A stretch of 64,000 nt of DNA from Tubulanus polymorphus (GCF_964204645.1 NC_134031.1:62001-126000), one strand, 5' to 3'. Shown: positions 41,163 to 49,800, counted from the stretch's first letter. Notes: generated by a model not told the origin, from the letters alone. Numbers and translations: made by a program.

Positions 41163-41536
41163 CTCTTATTGTTGTCGTTTTACCTGCAAATTATCAACAA
41201 ATAACTATTAACTATTTGACAGTTGAAAAATCATGAATCAGGTAGGAAGGGGAGTGTGTGACTGAATGTCAAAGTCACACCGCACACCCGGTCACAGAAC
41301 CGACCGGCTGCAGCACTTTCAATCACTCTTTTCTCTCAATCCCAACCACTGCAAAAATAAAGACGATTTAAAAGTTTTAAAGATGAAACTCACCTGATAT
41401 CAGAGCGGTTTATTAATCACTTTAGACGACAGAAATGTTTAAAACACTGGTGTGAAACTGCGTGGCTGTGTTATACTGATTGAGTTGTGAGAATGAAGGG
41501 GTTTCCTCATTATATTTTACTACGTCGCCTTCAAGT

Positions 41537-41587
41537 CGTGTCCTTCGCTGATTGGATGAAATACCGGCGCTGGCGATAGTTGATTGG
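41537..41587 (-). promoter_or_regulatory. Two ER-stress-response-element-like motifs upstream of BiP
   Basis: Minus strand CCAAT-N9-ACACG (41555-41537) and CCAAT-N9-CCAGC (41587-41569), against the consensus CCAAT-N9-CCACG. Confidence 0.65.
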
Positions 41588-42159
41588 TGCAAGTGTTTCG
41601 TCAAGGAATTTCCACGTAAGTTTCCGGGATTCATGGCGTAAATTACCGAACAAAGTGCGTAATTACAATTCAAATGTAAACTTCAATTCGTATGTACACG
41701 TATAGTTTTAAGACGATAAGATAAAGATTCGATCGTCAGTGACTGACGAAATACTCGGTCACTCGATCGTAATCAGTCGTAATGACGTCATCACTGGAGA
41801 TCTGGGTCAGCTGGAGGTCAGAAACCATCATTTCCGTCTTCTCAGAATGGCCGTCAGCGGGTGTGGATGATGAATTCGTTTGCTCCGTGAATCTTTCCGC
41901 ATCCTCGCACACTGTAGGTATCTACTATTAAATTATTTCTTATATCTCATATTTATCGAGTTTACACCTAAATATCTAACGATATTGTTTTGTATCCACG
42001 AATTAACGATGTTTAAGATGTAAATTTCTTCGCGGTAATCTGTTAAGAGTTTCTGAATCGTTATGATCTATAAAACATCCTTCCAATTATCACAAATCAT
42101 GAAGTAGAATTCTGTGTAACCTCTCTGTTGTCTCTGTTCGATTGAGGGTCGTATTTTTT

Positions 42160-42239
42160 GGTACCGATGATGAATAAATTTTGCCAGATGAAACGCAATG
42201 AAATCAAAACTTAACGTTCCATATAATTACTGAGGTACC
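42160..42239 (+). ncRNA. Box C/D snoRNA, target unassigned
   Basis: ggtacc-g-ATGATGA(42167)...CTGA(42230)-ggtacc terminal stem. Confidence 0.65.
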
Positions 42240-42623
42240 TTAAACAATATCGAGGGTGTTAATCGCGAAGTAGGCTTTTTAATGGGATGTTCGGGGACTA
42301 GGGGAGGGATCTGGTGGGGTTGAAAAAGGATAGGTTTGCCAGGGTGGGTTGGTACATTGGCCGGGGTTCCTCTACAACGGTGTACAATGAGAAAAAACCA
42401 AACCGCGTCCGCACTTTCATCCTGCCTGTAATGAACAGAAAGATCTCAGGATGATAAAAAGGAAGGAAAGATGCTGCCTGGGAGTTGAAGGCTGGGGCCG
42501 GATGTGAGAACAAATGATGATTAACTTGCCCTCTCATATTCATACATGATGCTCTTTTTATTCTGATGTTCTCAATTTATCTCTAAAATCAACTCATTTC
42601 AATCTCATCAGTAGTTTCAGTAA

Positions 42624-42716
42624 CAGTGTGTTTGTAATGATGACAATAAGATGGGAATCTCTCTGTATTTCAAAAAAATGAAGATAAATTCATTGATTCT
42701 GATTCTAAACACACTG
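42624..42716 (+). ncRNA. Box C/D snoRNA, SNORD79-like
   Basis: Stem cagtgtgttt/aaacacactg, C box 42637, D box 42699; AGATGGGAATCTCTCTG matches recalled SNORD79 and pairs with 28S GAGAUUCCCA. Confidence 0.8.
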
Positions 42717-42875
42717 AATCACAGTCTGAACTAGACACCCCAATCTATAAACACCTCAACTTGAAAACATGTCTATTCTCTATATTTTAGGGTCTGATCT
42801 GAAGGTTTCACTTTGATTTCAACGCTATGTGAGGTGAGAGTCTAAATGATTAGATTAGTTAGTAAAAAATCATGA

Positions 42876-42943
42876 AAAGTCAATGATGATATTAGAATAG
42901 GGACATATGAAATCTAATGACTATTTATTGTTTCTGAGACTTT
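42876..42943 (+). ncRNA. Box C/D snoRNA, SNORD74-like (copy 1)
   Basis: aaagtc-a-ATGATGA...ATAGGGACA-t-ATGA(D')...CTGA-gacttt; guide pairs with 28S UGUCCCUA. Confidence 0.75.
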
Positions 42944-43118
42944 ACTTTATTTCACTTTTGATGATTTCTGAGTTATTTGAGTTGAATCTGATTTGTGTAA
43001 ATGGTTTTAATTGTAGGCGGGTGTGGAACTCACTCTGGTGGATGATGTGGAACTCGACATGAATCAGGATGTGGAACTCTCCTCTAAGTGGTAAGAAAGA
43101 GTGATCTCAATGAGAAAT

Positions 43119-43248
43119 ATCCTCCTTAAAAAAATCACAAAGACTCGAAGTGCTGGAACTGATTTTATGTCGGGAGGAGAAATAAACAGCCCATATAAAA
43201 CCCTGAATTGTCGAATACAGTTTCTGGATCTGTCGTGAGGCTACAAAT
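43119..43248 (+). ncRNA. Box H/ACA snoRNA (paralog A1)
   Basis: Hairpin, AAATAA H box, hairpin, ACA(43243)+3 nt; 3' pocket taaaac/atctgtc; paralog of 43464-43599. Confidence 0.65.
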
Positions 43249-43277
43249 AAATATTATAAAATTAATAATTATTCAGA

Positions 43278-43416
43278 TAACGAGTAGCAGAGTTACCGGG
43301 TAAATCTGTTACTATAGTAACCCGGCGCTAAACAGCTCGTATATAAAATAATTGTCTAATGCACTGGTCTACCTGCTTCTGTGCTAGTTCCAGTCACCTC
43401 TGACATTTAAACATTA
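43278..43416 (+). ncRNA. Box H/ACA snoRNA (possibly SNORA3-like)
   Basis: acgag..ccgggt/acccgg..ctcgt hairpin, ATATAA H box, second hairpin actgg/ccagt with pocket atgc/cacctct, ACA at 43411. Confidence 0.55.
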
Positions 43417-43463
43417 CTTCTATTTGTATTTACCTCTATAACTTATTGATCCATCTTAAATTC

Positions 43464-43599
43464 GTTCCCCTTTAATATAATGAGTTTGGACTCGAAGCGC
43501 TGAACTGATTAATGTCGGGGGAGTAAAATAAAACGCCCATCTTAAACCCAGTTTTACAACTATTATTGTATTACTGGACCTGTCTCTCGGGTGACATTT
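43464..43599 (+). ncRNA. Box H/ACA snoRNA (paralog A2)
   Basis: tcccc/gggga hairpin, AAAATA H box, cgccc/gggtg hairpin, ACA(43594)+3 nt; pocket taaac/acctgtctc fits 28S GAGACAGGU-(psi)A-GUUU. Confidence 0.75.
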
Positions 43600-43653
43600 T
43601 TATATCATACTTATAGGTTATTAACTGGTCAGGTTATTAGGGAAGTTTGGGGT

Positions 43654-43759
43654 TCTGCGATGATGTTGTAATTTGCGCCTGATAAGAACTGCGAGATGAC
43701 GGTTGCCGCTGTCACTATATCTCCATTTCCAACTTGATGACAAACTATTTCTGAGCAGA
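43654..43759 (+). ncRNA. SNORD16: Box C/D snoRNA U16 (SNORD16-like)
   Basis: tctgc/gcaga stem; ATGATGT-tGTAATTTGCGC-CTGA pairs with 18S GCGCAAAUUAC; internal gacggttgccgctgtca resembles recalled U16 GACAGTTGCCTGCTGTCA. Confidence 0.85.
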
Positions 43760-43924
43760 TCTCTCTCGACCAGCGCCCTCATCAAACCCTCTTCATATTC
43801 CTTATCGTTTTATAATTGATTGATCTATTGTTTTCAGGGGAGGATCGACACCTGTCTGTGAGTGACTTCGTAACCAGTAACGATAAGGTAACTACTGTTT
43901 ATTCTGTTGAACTGTTTATTTCTA

Positions 43925-44004
43925 GAAACTGAATGATGAATATCAATGAAGTCGTTAATTCTATTGCCGACCAACTCATCACCCATCTTACTGATATCAG
44001 TTTC
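43925..44004 (+). ncRNA. Box C/D snoRNA, target unassigned
   Basis: gaaactga-ATGATGA(43933)...CTGA(43991)-ta-tcagtttc, 8-bp stem. Confidence 0.65.
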
Positions 44005-44042
44005 AACTCTGAATTGTATTCTCAATTAAAAAATTTTAATGA

Positions 44043-44172
44043 TGCCATTTTCCATTGAGTTCATTTCAAATGAATGTTTCTCCTTCCATGTTTGGCTAAA
44101 TTGATTCGCCGTGAAATTAATCAGATTCTTGTTTGATTTAAACATTCAAGAGTTAATTTCACGGTTACAGTA
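44043..44172 (+). ncRNA. Candidate H/ACA snoRNA
   Basis: Strong 3' hairpin ccgtgaaattaa/ttaatttcacgg followed by ACA at 44167; H box not clean. Confidence 0.4.
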
Positions 44173-44333
44173 GCAGCGTCTGATATTCTGATCTGAAGTA
44201 TGAACTTATTTAATTGCTCTTTACAGGTGGCAACTAGTCTGGAACTGAGTGAGTTGCTGTAACCAAGGGAAACCCGCTGTTACCCGGGATGCTGTTGTTG
44301 AGGTGATTATTGATTAGTTTTATATTAAATAGA

Positions 44334-44439
44334 TGAATGAAGTCTATCAATGATGAGGAAAGAATATTTGCTATCAGAGACGCCTCGTTCGCTGAAGACC
44401 GATATTTATCACCAAGATCTCTGAGCTAAACTTCATTCA
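44334..44439 (+). ncRNA. SNORD24: Box C/D snoRNA U24 (SNORD24-like)
   Basis: tgaatgaagt/acttcattca stem; ATGATGA; both U24 guides AGAATATTTGCTA-t-CAGA and CACCAAGATCT-CTGA, pairing with 28S AGAUCUUGGUG..UAGCAAAUAUUC. Confidence 0.9.
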
Positions 44440-44665
44440 ACCTCGTTATTTTGTAAGAGAAATATTTCTAGAATTAAACAATGCGTGAATGTTAAAACTG
44501 TTTGACTGAATGATACAAACGGTTAACACTATTTAACGGTCAGCGCTAGATCACATCAGCTAGGATTCGCTAACGCCAATAAGGGTTAATCCTAATGATT
44601 GGAGTTTGATAGTACCCTTGCTACAAAGCAATTTTAAATTTTGTTAAGTAAGTGTCTGTTGCTGA

Positions 44666-44729
44666 AGTCAGTGATGATATAAGAATAGGGACATATGAAA
44701 TATAATGACTATTTATTGTTTCTGAGACT
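44666..44729 (+). ncRNA. Box C/D snoRNA, SNORD74-like (copy 2)
   Basis: agtc-a-GTGATGA...AGAATAGGGACATATGA...CTGA-gact; nearly identical to 42876-42943. Confidence 0.75.
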
Positions 44730-44768
44730 AAACTTTACCTGATGAAATAGTAAGTTTTAAATTGTACG

Positions 44769-44853
44769 AATGTTTGCTATGATGATTATTTAGATCTGTC
44801 AATCCACTGAAATATAAATCTGTGTTGACAACTTTGTCCACTGAGCAAACATT
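44769..44853 (+). ncRNA. Box C/D snoRNA, SNORD110-like
   Basis: aatgtttgc/gcaaacatt 9-bp stem; guide ATCTGTCAATCC-a-CTGA pairs with 18S GGAUUGACAGAU. Confidence 0.8.
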
Positions 44854-45779
44854 AAACATTACTTGAATTAGATTAAATAAACGTGTAGCACATGATTAGA
44901 GCTGAGTTCTCAGTTCAGTAAGAATCTCGGTGTCAAATTGTGCAATATTAGATTCATACAGTGAGGTTTGCGTCTAATGTATTTAATTCTCCTGTAGTTT
45001 AATACAAGACTAATCTCTCTATAAACTCCAATTCTCAACCCTTTATTCTTGAAAATTCTATTACGAAATTTTGTATTTAATTGTTGTATTTTTGTTATTT
45101 CAGGTAAGATTATTTTCTGGTGTTGATAGAAGAATTTCCGAATCAAATTTTAAGATGAATTTTAGATATATTTGATTGAGATGAATAAAAGAAATGATAT
45201 ATTTGAATTTATTTGTCAATTTGATTATTTCTCAAATTGCAAGGATTTAAATGTTTGATGCAGCTCATTAGAGAATCAACTGGAATAGTGATCCCCAGTG
45301 TAAGGAGAATTCTTCAACCTGCTCAATGGGCCCCATTCTACACATCACCACATTCTGGTTTTAGAAGCTGCTTTTAACTAATTACTGGAGTGTAGGTTGA
45401 CATCTTCATTCATGCACTTGGACATGGTTATTGCCCAACAGTGATGTGTGTGTTTGGCTAATGATTATTTATAAGTATATCGTTTCTCAAAAAGCAGGTT
45501 TTAGCACTAACTGATTTGTGTAAGGTAAGCGCAAATAATTGGGGCCTTCAATTATTTTCCAGAAAGTAGAACTGCACAGTTGACTTAATGATGGAAACCA
45601 TGCTGGTCTAACTGAACACAATTTATAACCATCAGAACAATCCACATCAGAAAACTGAACAAAAACGATCATTTATTTACAAATGTCATTTATTGGGAGA
45701 CAATACGGATTAAACATCACACTTTCTAAGCTGCCCCTGTGACTGTATTTCAATTCCAATCAAGTCTTAAAAAGGGATT

Positions 45780-46354: not shown

Positions 46355-46825
46355 GACTCCTATCTGAAATAATTAACGTTTTATTGCGGTAATTAGTTCG
46401 ATTTCAAAAGACATTTTTAGTGCGACTGTTTCACTCGGTAATTAAGACGACTGTCGACTGTGTCCAGTAAAATAGTTTAAGAGAGTGCAGAAAAATTAAA
46501 ATCTATTAAAAATTCATTTGCTTTACTTAGAAAATCGGAGTATTTAAGAAAAAACAAATTATAAACTTACCGGAAGTACCCACACTATTTATAGTTATTG
46601 TTAATTGAATTGATTTCTGTGTCTTAAGTACCGAATAATTAACAAAATCAATTTAACTGACATTGATACTTTTCTACGACAATAGAATATTTTTTTTTCT
46701 GTTGATTTCCTGCTCATCAATCATTTTCAAAATGTAAATGATTAATGAACAATAAATACAATTTGTATTTAGATTTGATTTCCCACAATCCACCGTACTT
46801 CCTTTTCCTGCACAAGTAGAGAATC

Positions 46826-49800
46826 ATGGTGGGTGAAAAATAGCGAAAATACTTTTAAAATCCATCGATTACTTTTATTACACAAATCATCACATTCTGA
46901 AATTTATATATTTTACAAATTTAACATTTTTGCAATTCGTTAATATCGATCAATTTAAGTCAGAATTTGTAAATCGACCTGAAATGAACTGTTGAAATGT
47001 TCACTTCCGTATTCTATGTTTGATATTTTACACGCTTTTAAAACCGGTTTCTTCAACTATTGCTTTTCTATTTTCAGCCGAAGCCAAAGAAGGGAAAGAA
47101 GAAGGTTGCAGCAGCGCCTCTTGTGGCTAAAAAGGTCGAACCTAAGAAGGTTGTCAATCCGCTTTTTGAGAAACGTCCCAAGAATTTTGGCATCGGTAAG
47201 TTATCAATTCAATCCTAGAGATTATCTGAATATTGATGTTGCAGTTGAAATGTCAAGTTTTATCTGATGAAATTTTCCAGGTCAGGACATCCAACCTAAG
47301 CGTGATTTATCAAGATTTGTGAAATGGCCGAAATATGTGCGCCTTCAAAGACAGAAGGCTTCATTATTGCAGAGATTGAAGGTGCCGCCACCTGTGAATC
47401 AATTTAGAAACGCTCTCGACAGACAAACAGGTTCGCATTCATTCATTCAACTCAGAAATGTTTTAATTTTGGCGATGATGAAGATTTGAATACTGAATTT
47501 TCCTGTTGTAATTCATTGAGCTTTTTAACCCTGAGCCAAAAAAACTTGTTGCACAAAATAGAAATTGAATCAACAATGTTTGATTTGATAATGATTTATT
47601 CGTTTGTTTATATTTGTAGCGATTCAGTTGTTTAAATTGATGGATAAATATCGTCCAGAAACGAAACAACAGAAGAAAGTTCGATTAGTCGCTCGAGCTA
47701 AAGAGAGAGTGAAGGGTAAAGATGACGTTCCGACTAAACGTGCTTTAGCCGTCAGATCAGGAGTGAATGTAGTCACTAGATTGATAGAACAGAAGAAAGC
47801 ACAACTTGTGGTTATCGCTCATGATGTTGATCCTATTGAGGTAATCATTGTCTAAAACTTCAGTCTCAGTCTAAGGGTTCACCCTACACTGTACTGTCTC
47901 TGTGCAAGGGTTCACCTGATCTATGGGTTCACCCAGACTCTTGTCTAAGGGTTCACCCTACAGGCTGTACTGTCTCTGTGCTAGGGTTCACCTGATCTAT
48001 GGGTTCACCCAGTCTCTTGTCTAAGGGTTCACCCTACACACTGTACTGTCTCTGTGCTAGGGTTCACCTGATCTATGAGTTCACCCAGTCTCTTGTCTAT
48101 GGGTTCACCTGGTCTCTGGGTTCTTTGTGTAAGGGTTCACCCTACACACTGTACTGTCTCTGTGTTAGGGTTCACCTGATCTATGGGTTCACCTGATTTA
48201 TGGGTTCACCCAGTCTCTTGTCTAAGGGTTCACCTGGTCTCTGGGTTCTTTGTGTAAGGGTTCACCCTACACACTGTACTGTCTCTGTGCTAGGGTTCAC
48301 CTGATCTATGGGTTCACCCAGTCTCTTGTCTAAGGGTTCACCTGGTCTCTGGGTTCTTTGTGTAAGGGTTCACCCTACACACTGTACTGTCTCTGTGTTA
48401 GGGTTCACCTGATCTATGGGTTCACCTGATCTATGGGTTCACCCAGTCTCTTGTCTAAGGGTTCACCTGGTCTCTGGGTTCTTTGTGTAAGGGTTCACCC
48501 TACACGCTGTACTGTCTCTGTGCTAGGGTTCACCTGATCTATGGGTTCACCCAGTCTCTTGTCTAAGGGTTCACCCTACACACTGTACTGTCTCTGTGCT
48601 AGGGTTCACCTGATCTATGAGTTCACCCAGTCTCTTGTCTAAGGGTTCACCTGGTCTCTGGGTTCTTTGTGTAAGGGTTCACCCTACACACTGTACTGTC
48701 TCTGTGTTAGGGTTCACCTGATCTATGGGTTCACCCAGTCTCTTGTCTAAGGGTTCACCTGGTCTCTGGGTTCTTTGTGTAAGGGTTCACCCTACACACT
48801 GTACTGTCTCTGTGTTAGGGTTCACCTGATCTATGGGTTCACCTGATTTATGGGTTCACCCAGTCTCTTGTCTAAGGGTTCACCTGGTCTCTGGGTTCTT
48901 TGTCTAAGGGTTCACCCTACACACTGTACTGTCTCTGTGTTAGGGTTCACCTGATCTATGGGTTCACCTGATTTATGGGTTCACCCAGTCTCTTGTCTAA
49001 GGGTTCACCTGGTCTCTGGGTTCTTTGTCTAAGGGTTCACCCTACACACTGTACTGTCTCTGCTAGGGTTTACCTGATTTATGGGTTCACCTGATTTATG
49101 GGTTCACCCAGTCTCTGGGTTCTTTCTGTTAGGGTTCCCTCCAGTCTCTTGTGTAAGGGTTCACTCAAGTCATTGGGTTCTCTTAAGGGTTCCCTCCAGT
49201 CCGTTGTGTAAGGGTTCTTTCTGTACGGGTTCACCTGATATCAGGGTTCCTGTCTTCGTGATCCGATGTATAATTTGTTAGTGTTTTTCAGATCGTATTA
49301 TTTTTACCAGCTCTGTGTCGTAAGATGGGCGTCCCGTATTGTATTGTGAAAGGTAAAGCTCGAGTTGGACGAGTTGTACACCGTAAAACAGCTACGTGTT
49401 TGGCTATTACATCAGTTCATCCGTAAGTACACCCCTTACACCCCCTGCTCCCCCCCGACCATCTGTATCTCGGGAGACTATGATGTTTGAAATGAATTTC
49501 TTCACCTGATTCCGTGTGAAGACGACATAATTTTTCTGAGCTCCTGAGAAACTGATTTCAATGTTGTAAATGTGTTGATGATGTAATGTTTTAAGATGAG
49601 ATGTTTGTTTGTTTTCAGCGAGGATCGAGCTCAATTAAATAAAGTTGTGGAAGCCGTAAAAACGAACTTCAACGATCGATTCGACGAGGTACGTTTTATT
49701 AATTCATTTACTGTTTCTATAGCGATGATGATTTTATTGAATTTCTTCACCTGAATTATTTCAATTGTTGAAATCGTAGACAATCCTGAGCTATATAAAT

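Follow-up and report, generated by a model that had tools for sequence, protein, structure and literature searches.

A spliced, non-coding candidate host gene for about 13 predicted small nucleolar RNAs between BiP and MED22 in Tubulanus polymorphus

Non-coding genes that host several small nucleolar RNAs (snoRNAs) are established in vertebrates, where UHG and gas5 are among them (PMC2653536), and in Drosophila, where each Uhg intron holds a single snoRNA (PMC4430873). The gas5-like host of chicken carries U74, U79, U47 and U81, and other chicken hosts carry further guides: U24 and U36 are found in RPL7A, U16 in RPL4, HBII-55 (SNORD110) in NOL5A (NOP56), E2 (SNORA62) in RPSA, and U103 in PUM1 (PMC2653536). 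Here, we describe a probable gene of this type in Tubulanus polymorphus. It lies within a stretch of 64,000 nucleotides (nt) (GCF_964204645.1 NC_134031.1:62001-126000), which we call the window, and occupies window positions 41687-45131 on the plus strand; the genome has 268 Mb. Features described below are on this strand unless we say otherwise. Our reading, to which we give a probability of about 0.85, is that this region is a spliced gene transcribed by RNA polymerase II, that it has no credible coding frame, and that its product is about 13 snoRNAs, nine of the box C/D class (CD1 to CD9) and four of the H/ACA class (HA2, HA3, HA4 and HA6). A first-pass annotation, made from the sequence alone, had proposed a GAS5/UHG-like host that pools guides which vertebrates spread over several genes. 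The pooling is borne out, since guides found here sit in several separate hosts in chicken (PMC2653536). The likeness to GAS5 and UHG was right as to a spliced, non-coding gene with intronic snoRNAs but not as to one snoRNA per intron, because the intron at 43091-43837 holds four.

The locus is like GAS5 in its short exons of 50-78 nt, in having no credible open reading frame (ORF), in its high expression, and in that the snoRNAs appear to be its constrained parts. SNORD47, SNORD79 and SNORD74 are common to both, by target site. However, GAS5 contains only C/D snoRNAs, one per intron, whereas here an intron holds up to four units and four units are H/ACA. The locus also carries SNORD16, SNORD24, SNORD110 and SNORA62, whose vertebrate hosts are RPL4, RPL7A, NOP56 and RPSA, and its neighbours are BiP and MED22, not those of GAS5. 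As with Drosophila Uhg1-Uhg8, we are dealing with an invertebrate, non-coding, spliced host of multiple snoRNAs (PMC4430873), but one with several units per intron and mixed classes, which makes it closer to the atypical Uhg-46E3 (PMC5932544). With the intronic clusters of flies and plants it shares the presence of several snoRNAs in one intron, which implies endonucleolytic separation. Those clusters, in plants and flies alike, are mostly in protein-coding hosts and often consist of single-class tandem copies; Drosophila reportedly has introns that each hold a cluster of several H/ACA snoRNAs. Here, in contrast, the host is non-coding, the families are unrelated, and both classes are present. 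The less usual traits of the locus are the presence of multiple snoRNAs, of both classes, in single introns of a non-coding host and the convergence of four guides on 28S 2861-2927.

The RNA evidence consists of assembled contigs rather than raw reads, and some contigs may be hidden by a filter. One run (X2) behaves as RNA, because it covers the RPL7A exons at a depth of about 15754 and shows the MED22 introns as CT..AC joints. A second run (X3) has no joints and an even depth; it therefore resembles DNA or nascent RNA and contributes nothing on splicing. A third (X5, possible RNA, 2015) gave no contig over the region. In X2 we found two plus-strand GT..AG joints, which remove 43091-43837 (depth 1524) and 43888-44226 (depth 1929). 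These junction depths are about 6-8 times that of MED22 (235). Unspliced contigs over the two introns have depths of 50-70, including one that spans 43084-43848 at a depth of 70; introns here range from 27 to 70, and the junction depth is 20-40 times the intron depth. Thus, both borders of exon 4 (43838-43887, 50 nt) are proven, together with the exon 3 donor and the exon 5 acceptor. Exon 3, in the numbering of the first-pass annotation, covers 43017-43090 (74 nt); its donor is joined from 43090 to 43838, and its acceptor between 43016 and 43017 is putative. Exon 5 covers 44227-44304, with a proposed donor between 44304 and 44305. The first proven intron (43091-43837) holds HA2, HA3, HA4 and CD5, and the second (43888-44226) holds CD6 plus a hairpin at 44108-44165; together the two hold 6 units, and the other 7 lie in regions whose splicing out is putative. 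A spliced plus-strand transcript, which the first-pass annotation had named as a check on its proposal, is thus present in abundant RNA with two GT..AG introns removed. Among the short AG/GT-bounded exons that it proposed, RNA contigs join those at 43017-43090, 43838-43887 and 44227-44304 to one another, but a further one at about 42791-42833, which could split intron 1, falls where the RNA depth is only 16, with neither a joint nor high-depth RNA cover. Exon 3 also contains three copies of an 11-nt TGTGGAACTC-like motif, about 24 nt apart.

At the 5' end, an RNA contig covers 41687-41914 at a depth of about 199, and the depth drops to about 28 from 41935. The drop after 41914 fits the donor that the first-pass annotation had placed between 41917 and 41918 (GTATCT), and we accordingly draw exon 1 at 41687-41917, with an approximate 5' end. 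The same annotation had started the gene at a CTTTCC resembling a terminal oligopyrimidine (TOP) start at 41893. This motif falls inside exon 1. With RNA cover from about 41687, at least some transcripts begin about 206 nt upstream of it, and the contigs, which cannot place a transcription start, do not confirm it as one. An initiator-like TTCAATTC lies at 41682-41689, near the start of the RNA cover. Putative intron 1 (41918-43016), which holds CD1 to CD4 and a GC-rich spacer, has an intron-like RNA depth of 16-40.

The 3' part of the locus (44305-45131) holds CD7, HA6, CD8 and CD9 and is transcribed. A single 906-nt contig with a mean depth of 272 runs from 44225 to 45131, unbroken across the proposed donor at 44304 and the proposed acceptor at 45104. 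Thus, SNORD24 (CD7), SNORA62 (HA6), CD8 and SNORD110 (CD9) are in RNA that is transcribed but may not be excised as an intron. X2 has no RNA cover over 45132-45694. A last exon at 45104-45190 with an AATAAA (45183-45188), as drawn by the first-pass annotation, is therefore unsupported: the cover stops at 45131, and the contigs contain no 44304-to-45104 joint. When the mean depth of 272 is set against the junction depth of 1929, simple arithmetic leaves exon-level depth for only the first 100-130 nt or so after 44227. This calculation, which works from means, suggests a 3' end near the ATTAAA at 44324-44329. The segment 44305-45131 may be an intron, whether retained or the last one, or a tail made by read-through.

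A C/D unit has a C box (RUGAUGA) towards its 5' end, a D box (CUGA) towards its 3' end and a short terminal stem. We scanned 41500-45300 strictly for these three elements, with stems of 4 bp or longer. The scan returned 7 units on the plus strand and 0 on the minus strand. SNORD16 and SNORD24 are absent from this list and are supported via Rfam models, which brings the count to nine, all on the plus strand and none on the minus strand, where about 8 had been claimed. For SNORD79, the strict scan gives a more distal CTGA as the D box; the borders of CD3 used here follow the Rfam model. In a sensitive Rfam scan, the check that the first-pass annotation had put forward, all matches were on the plus strand except one insignificant minus-strand match, and the conserved columns of the alignments are boxes and guide elements. 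SNORD47 (57.8 versus 50 bits), SNORD16 (48.1 versus 45) and SNORD24 (41.8 versus 41) score above the Rfam gathering threshold, and SNORD79 (38.3 versus 47), SNORD110 (41.8 versus 64) and SNORA62 (49.3 versus 80) score below it. For these last three, E values of 7e-4 to 2.5e-7 plus a conserved guide or target still support the predicted homology. SNORD47, which is the strongest match, and SNORA62 had both been missed in the first pass.

To place the guides, we used one ribosomal DNA unit (L003) of the same genome, in which 18S, 5.8S and 28S ribosomal RNA (rRNA) were delimited with Rfam. The rule applied to C/D units was a guide of at least 9-10 nt that runs up to the D or D' box and places its target opposite the fifth upstream nucleotide (N+5). 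CD1, CD3, CD4, CD5, CD7 (with two guides), CD8 and CD9 all obey it on the animal's own rRNA. The D' guide of CD1 (42162-42237; E = 5.5e-10), the SNORD47 homologue, forms an 11-bp duplex with 28S at C2921. CD3 (42626-42714; E = 7e-4), the SNORD79 homologue, pairs over 10 bp at 28S A2864, adjoining a CUGU D' box. CD5 (43656-43757), the SNORD16 homologue, has a D' guide that forms a perfect 11-bp duplex at 18S A504, adjoining CUGA. CD7 (44345-44428), the SNORD24 homologue, is a double guide, with duplexes of 15 and 13 bp at 28S C1817 and C1831. In CD9 (44770-44852), the SNORD110 homologue (Rfam match at 44774-44848, E = 2e-6), a perfect 13-bp core adjoining CUGA pairs at 18S U1320. As whole-sequence complementarity, the C/D guide matches do not rise above shuffles; their weight comes from their position beside the boxes and from homology. 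The identities SNORD79, SNORD16, SNORD24 and SNORD110, all named in the first pass, thus hold on the animal's own rRNA, whereas its SNORD74 stands by guide and target but not by Rfam model.

The SNORD74 call concerns CD4 (42877-42943), which has the boxes and the stem, and CD8 (44665-44731). The two are paralogues with near-identical snoRNA bodies and diverged flanks, and they carry the same guide to 28S C2875, which in CD4 forms a 9-bp N+5 duplex. Neither has a match to the Rfam SNORD74 model (RF00284) at E<=5. The weak Rfam matches of CD4 are to SNORD27 and Me28S-Cm2645, and the best genome-wide match of RF00284 lies elsewhere (E = 0.46). Because only guide and target match SNORD74, we call CD4 and CD8 copies 1 and 2 of a functional equivalent, not proven family members. 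The target spacing bears on this call. Relative to A2864, C2875 lies at +11 and C2921 at +57, offsets that are identical among the U79, U74 and U47 sites of vertebrates (3319, 3330 and 3376 in chicken; PMC2653536). Since C2875 stands at A2864+11, as do the U79 and U74 sites in chicken and human, the SNORD74 call is upheld functionally. Together with SNORA62, the SNORD79, SNORD74-like and SNORD47 guides are all predicted to act on 28S 2861-2927. Our literature search returned nothing on whether the fly Me28S-A2634 and C2645 snoRNAs have a common host.

Two C/D units are less well placed. CD2 (42506-42573) has a C box, a D box, an 8-bp terminal stem and a degenerate D' box, and it gives weak Rfam matches to SNORD81 (31.6 bits) and SNORD103 (27 bits). 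We rejected SNORD81, because the guide mismatches the SNORD81 target; the pairing with 18S 617-627 (G621; the human G601 region) instead fits the SNORD103 site, although a good D' box is absent. We tentatively regard CD2 as SNORD103-like. CD6 (43925-44002) has a C box, a D box and an 8-bp terminal stem and is an orphan candidate, with no Rfam match and no convincing target on the genome's own rRNA.

Four units fold as hairpin-ANANNA-hairpin-ACA, in line with the 3-4 H/ACA units that had been claimed. HA2 (43120-43248) has an H box AAATAA at 43180-43185 and an ACA at 43243-43245. HA4 (43462-43599), with an H box AAATAA at 43526-43531 and an ACA at 43594-43596, is a more distant paralogue of HA2 (76% in alignment) and gives a weak Rfam snR5 match. 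HA3 (43278-43416) has an H box ATATAA at 43341-43346 and an ACA at 43411-43413, and is ceN100-like (Rfam match at 43278-43413, 30.9 bits, E = 0.003-0.006). HA6 (44480-44628; E = 2.5e-7), the SNORA62/E2 homologue, has an H box AGATCA at 44548-44553 and an ACA at 44623-44625. We looked for the bipartite pocket of H/ACA snoRNAs, which pairs with rRNA on both sides of a U and lies 14-16 nt from the box. The 3' pocket of HA4 fits 28S U3633 perfectly (9+4 bp, 16 nt from the ACA) and that of HA3 fits 28S U2993 (7+4 bp, d = 16). The conserved 3' pocket arms of HA6, read by hand, flank 28S U2887/U2889 with 5+7 or 7+5 bp, at a site in the same helix as the vertebrate E2 site. These pocket assignments, made without a shuffle control, are tentative. 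No rRNA target was found for the 5' hairpins of the H/ACA units.

Three further segments were considered as snoRNA units and left out. The GC-rich spacer at 42240-42505, between SNORD47 and CD2, has no structure signal as an H/ACA unit (z = +1.8 and -1.0) and carries 10 single-nucleotide polymorphisms or short insertions and deletions in the RNA contigs, including an 8-nt insertion; it looks unconstrained. We also tried 44036-44226, both as an H/ACA unit with two hairpins and as a large C/D unit, but significance was confined to the hairpin at 44108-44165. This near-perfect hairpin of 58 nt (z = -5.7 versus shuffles), within the intron 43888-44226, has no Rfam match and could be a microRNA-like precursor or a processing signal. 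The third, 44868-45012, is doubtful as an H/ACA unit.

We then asked what else this region could be. The snoRNAs might be freed from the primary transcript by an endonuclease and exonucleases, as in a plant- or yeast-like polycistronic precursor, with splicing incidental and with SNORD24, SNORA62, CD8 and SNORD110 coming from read-through past the main 3' end. The presence of four mixed-class units in one proven intron is in keeping with this, as are the unbroken 906-nt contig from exon 5 through the last four snoRNAs, the missing cover of the proposed last exon, and the fit of the depths (272 versus 1929) to high depth over about 100-130 nt only, ending near the ATTAAA at 44324-44329. However, splicing is efficient, with junctions 20-40 times deeper than the introns, and contigs, some of which the filter may hide, cannot reveal RNA ends or rare isoforms. 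We regard this explanation as possible though doubtful, and it overlaps a spliced non-coding host rather than excluding it. Much weaker is the proposition that the host encodes a protein or micropeptide and that its introns carry snoRNAs by chance. One frame of exon 3 stays open over 24 codons, and the ATG at 41782 is open for 45 codons in exon 1 and could give 53-54 amino acids by continuing into the next exon. Yet per-exon translations have stops in nearly all frames, and exons 3-5 together offer at most an ORF of about 35 amino acids; ORF lengths across junctions are frame bookkeeping on the per-exon translations, not on a joined exon model. In addition, on neither strand did an ORF match Pfam above the curated cut-off; the five ORFs compared gave only two matches, both to minus-strand ORFs and far below it. 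Exon 5 lacks 1 nt, at 44286, in the RNA contigs, and exons of 50-78 nt are typical of non-coding hosts. We consider a coding host very unlikely, and the earlier statement that there is no credible ORF stands.

We give even less credence to the region being an alternative 5' or 3' extension of BiP, MED22 or RPL7A. SNORD24 does reside in RPL7A in vertebrates and lies beside RPL7A in one of the other-animal loci described below (L008), and fly Uhg7 can be co-transcribed with RpL23A. But the GT..AG joints are on the plus strand, whereas BiP and MED22 are on the minus strand, and between the host and RPL7A stand MED22, the stretch 45132-45694 without X2 cover, and RPL7A's own TOP-like first exon at about 46798-46828. 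Several points nevertheless weigh against a spliced, non-coding gene that yields 13 snoRNAs. No joint between exon 1 and exon 3 and none after exon 5, including 44304-to-45104, was recovered in the contigs, which cannot place the transcription start, the poly(A) site or the strand of unspliced cover. The ORF of 53-54 amino acids from the ATG at 41782, described above, is possible. The mature RNAs of 60-150 nt are predicted from the sequence, while the RNA evidence is assembled contigs. Four units, namely CD2, CD6, HA2 and the SNORD74 call with its missing Rfam match, are weakly supported. Finally, one point in its favour is weakened: the window differs from the RNA contigs at 3 of 1239 nt in snoRNA bodies and at 21 of 2071 nt outside them (Fisher p = 0.01), a rate four times lower inside, but 10 variants cluster in the spacer 42240-42505, so this comparison is only suggestive of constraint.

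If the region is a spliced, non-coding snoRNA host, as we favour, its products would arise as follows. Each unit would be packaged with its snoRNA-binding proteins, whether within the primary transcript or within the excised intron. Because introns hold up to four units, an endonuclease would have to cut the spacers before exonucleases trim to the borders of the ribonucleoproteins, and this order of processing would be that of plant and fly intronic clusters. For the last four snoRNAs, the source would be either a last intron that is spliced inefficiently or transcription that continues beyond exon 5; the spliced exon RNA would be a by-product. The C/D snoRNAs would direct 2'-O-methylation at 28S A2864, C2875, C2921, C1817 and C1831 and at 18S A504, U1320 and perhaps G621, and the H/ACA snoRNAs would direct pseudouridylation of 28S around U2887, U2993 and U3633.

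The neighbours are as the first-pass annotation had them. BiP, an Hsp70 gene whose protein ends in KDEL, lies on one side on the minus strand. On the other side are MED22 (SURF5; Pfam Med22), also on the minus strand, and beyond it RPL7A on the plus strand. RNA contigs show a non-coding first exon of BiP at about 41392-41498 on the minus strand; thus, the host and BiP are arranged head-to-head. Their transcribed regions are about 190 bp apart, and the two genes have a common divergent promoter of about this length. ERSE-like (endoplasmic reticulum stress response element) CCAAT-N9-ACACG elements lie on the minus strand at 41536-41590, directly upstream of the BiP first exon. A perfect palindromic cyclic AMP response element, TGACGTCA, is found at 41783-41790, within the host first exon or promoter region. 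The first exon of RPL7A is pyrimidine-rich. Its introns contain two SNORD36 copies (47470-47539 and 49720-49794, plus strand; Rfam), as in vertebrates, and two mechanical ORFs (47999-48196 and 49081-49281) that have a repeated peptide-like motif in common and point to a repeat family. In vertebrates, RPL7A hosts U24 together with U36a/b/c; here, SNORD24 is outside RPL7A, about 2.4 kb upstream, with MED22 in between. This placement looks like a short-range host switch.

In a BLAST comparison of the 3.7-kb region with the whole genome, we found the region itself plus one short SNORA62-like hairpin; the locus is single-copy. The hairpin, at 2510291-2510363 of contig C7 (G000), is 81% identical to the 3' hairpin of HA6, sits on the same contig at a distance of 2.4 Mb and may belong to a second SNORA62-family gene. 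The SNORD47 and SNORD24 models have no other match in the genome, as far as the searches reach, and among the best candidates, which were the ones scored, there is no better SNORD79, SNORD74, SNORD103 or SNORD81 elsewhere. We also examined eight loci of other animals, reached through MED22 exon homologues of 46-78% identity. None has a snoRNA cluster 3' of MED22 by Rfam; the matches in these loci are a SNORD36 (L004), a SNORD24 beside RPL7A (L008) and a hammerhead (L010). Thus, the position of the host looks lineage-specific, though the compared loci are from distant species and say little about close relatives. The hammerhead is a type I ribozyme match in a coral (L010:9506-9550, plus strand) that exceeds the gathering score, with 38.4 bits, and lies a short distance upstream of MED22.

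These comparisons bear on the relation to GAS5. The GAS5 families SNORD44, 75, 76, 77, 78 and 80 are absent from this locus, which has 3 of about 10 GAS5 families, mixed with non-GAS5 ones, and other neighbours. The likeness to GAS5 is in kind and not a demonstrated orthology. It could be argued that the co-hosting of SNORD79, SNORD74 and SNORD47, whose targets lie in one 60-nt stretch of 28S, is an ancestral GAS5-like linkage group that predates vertebrates, with SNORD24 and others exchanged with neighbour hosts such as RPL7A by short-range moves; the locus would then correspond to GAS5 and would not have been assembled independently. We think this unlikely.

What we describe is a known type of gene in a new example, and it leaves the current understanding of snoRNA biology unchanged. 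A well-supported non-coding snoRNA host fills an otherwise empty annotation gap of 3.5 kb, and, within their reach, our searches found no other source of the SNORD47 and SNORD24 guides in the genome. This animal breaks the one-snoRNA-per-intron rule, and its mixed C/D and H/ACA introns imply endonucleolytic processing. With U24 beside RPL7A and not inside it, the locus offers a clean case for the movement of snoRNAs between neighbouring hosts, and it bears on whether the GAS5 guide set predates vertebrates.

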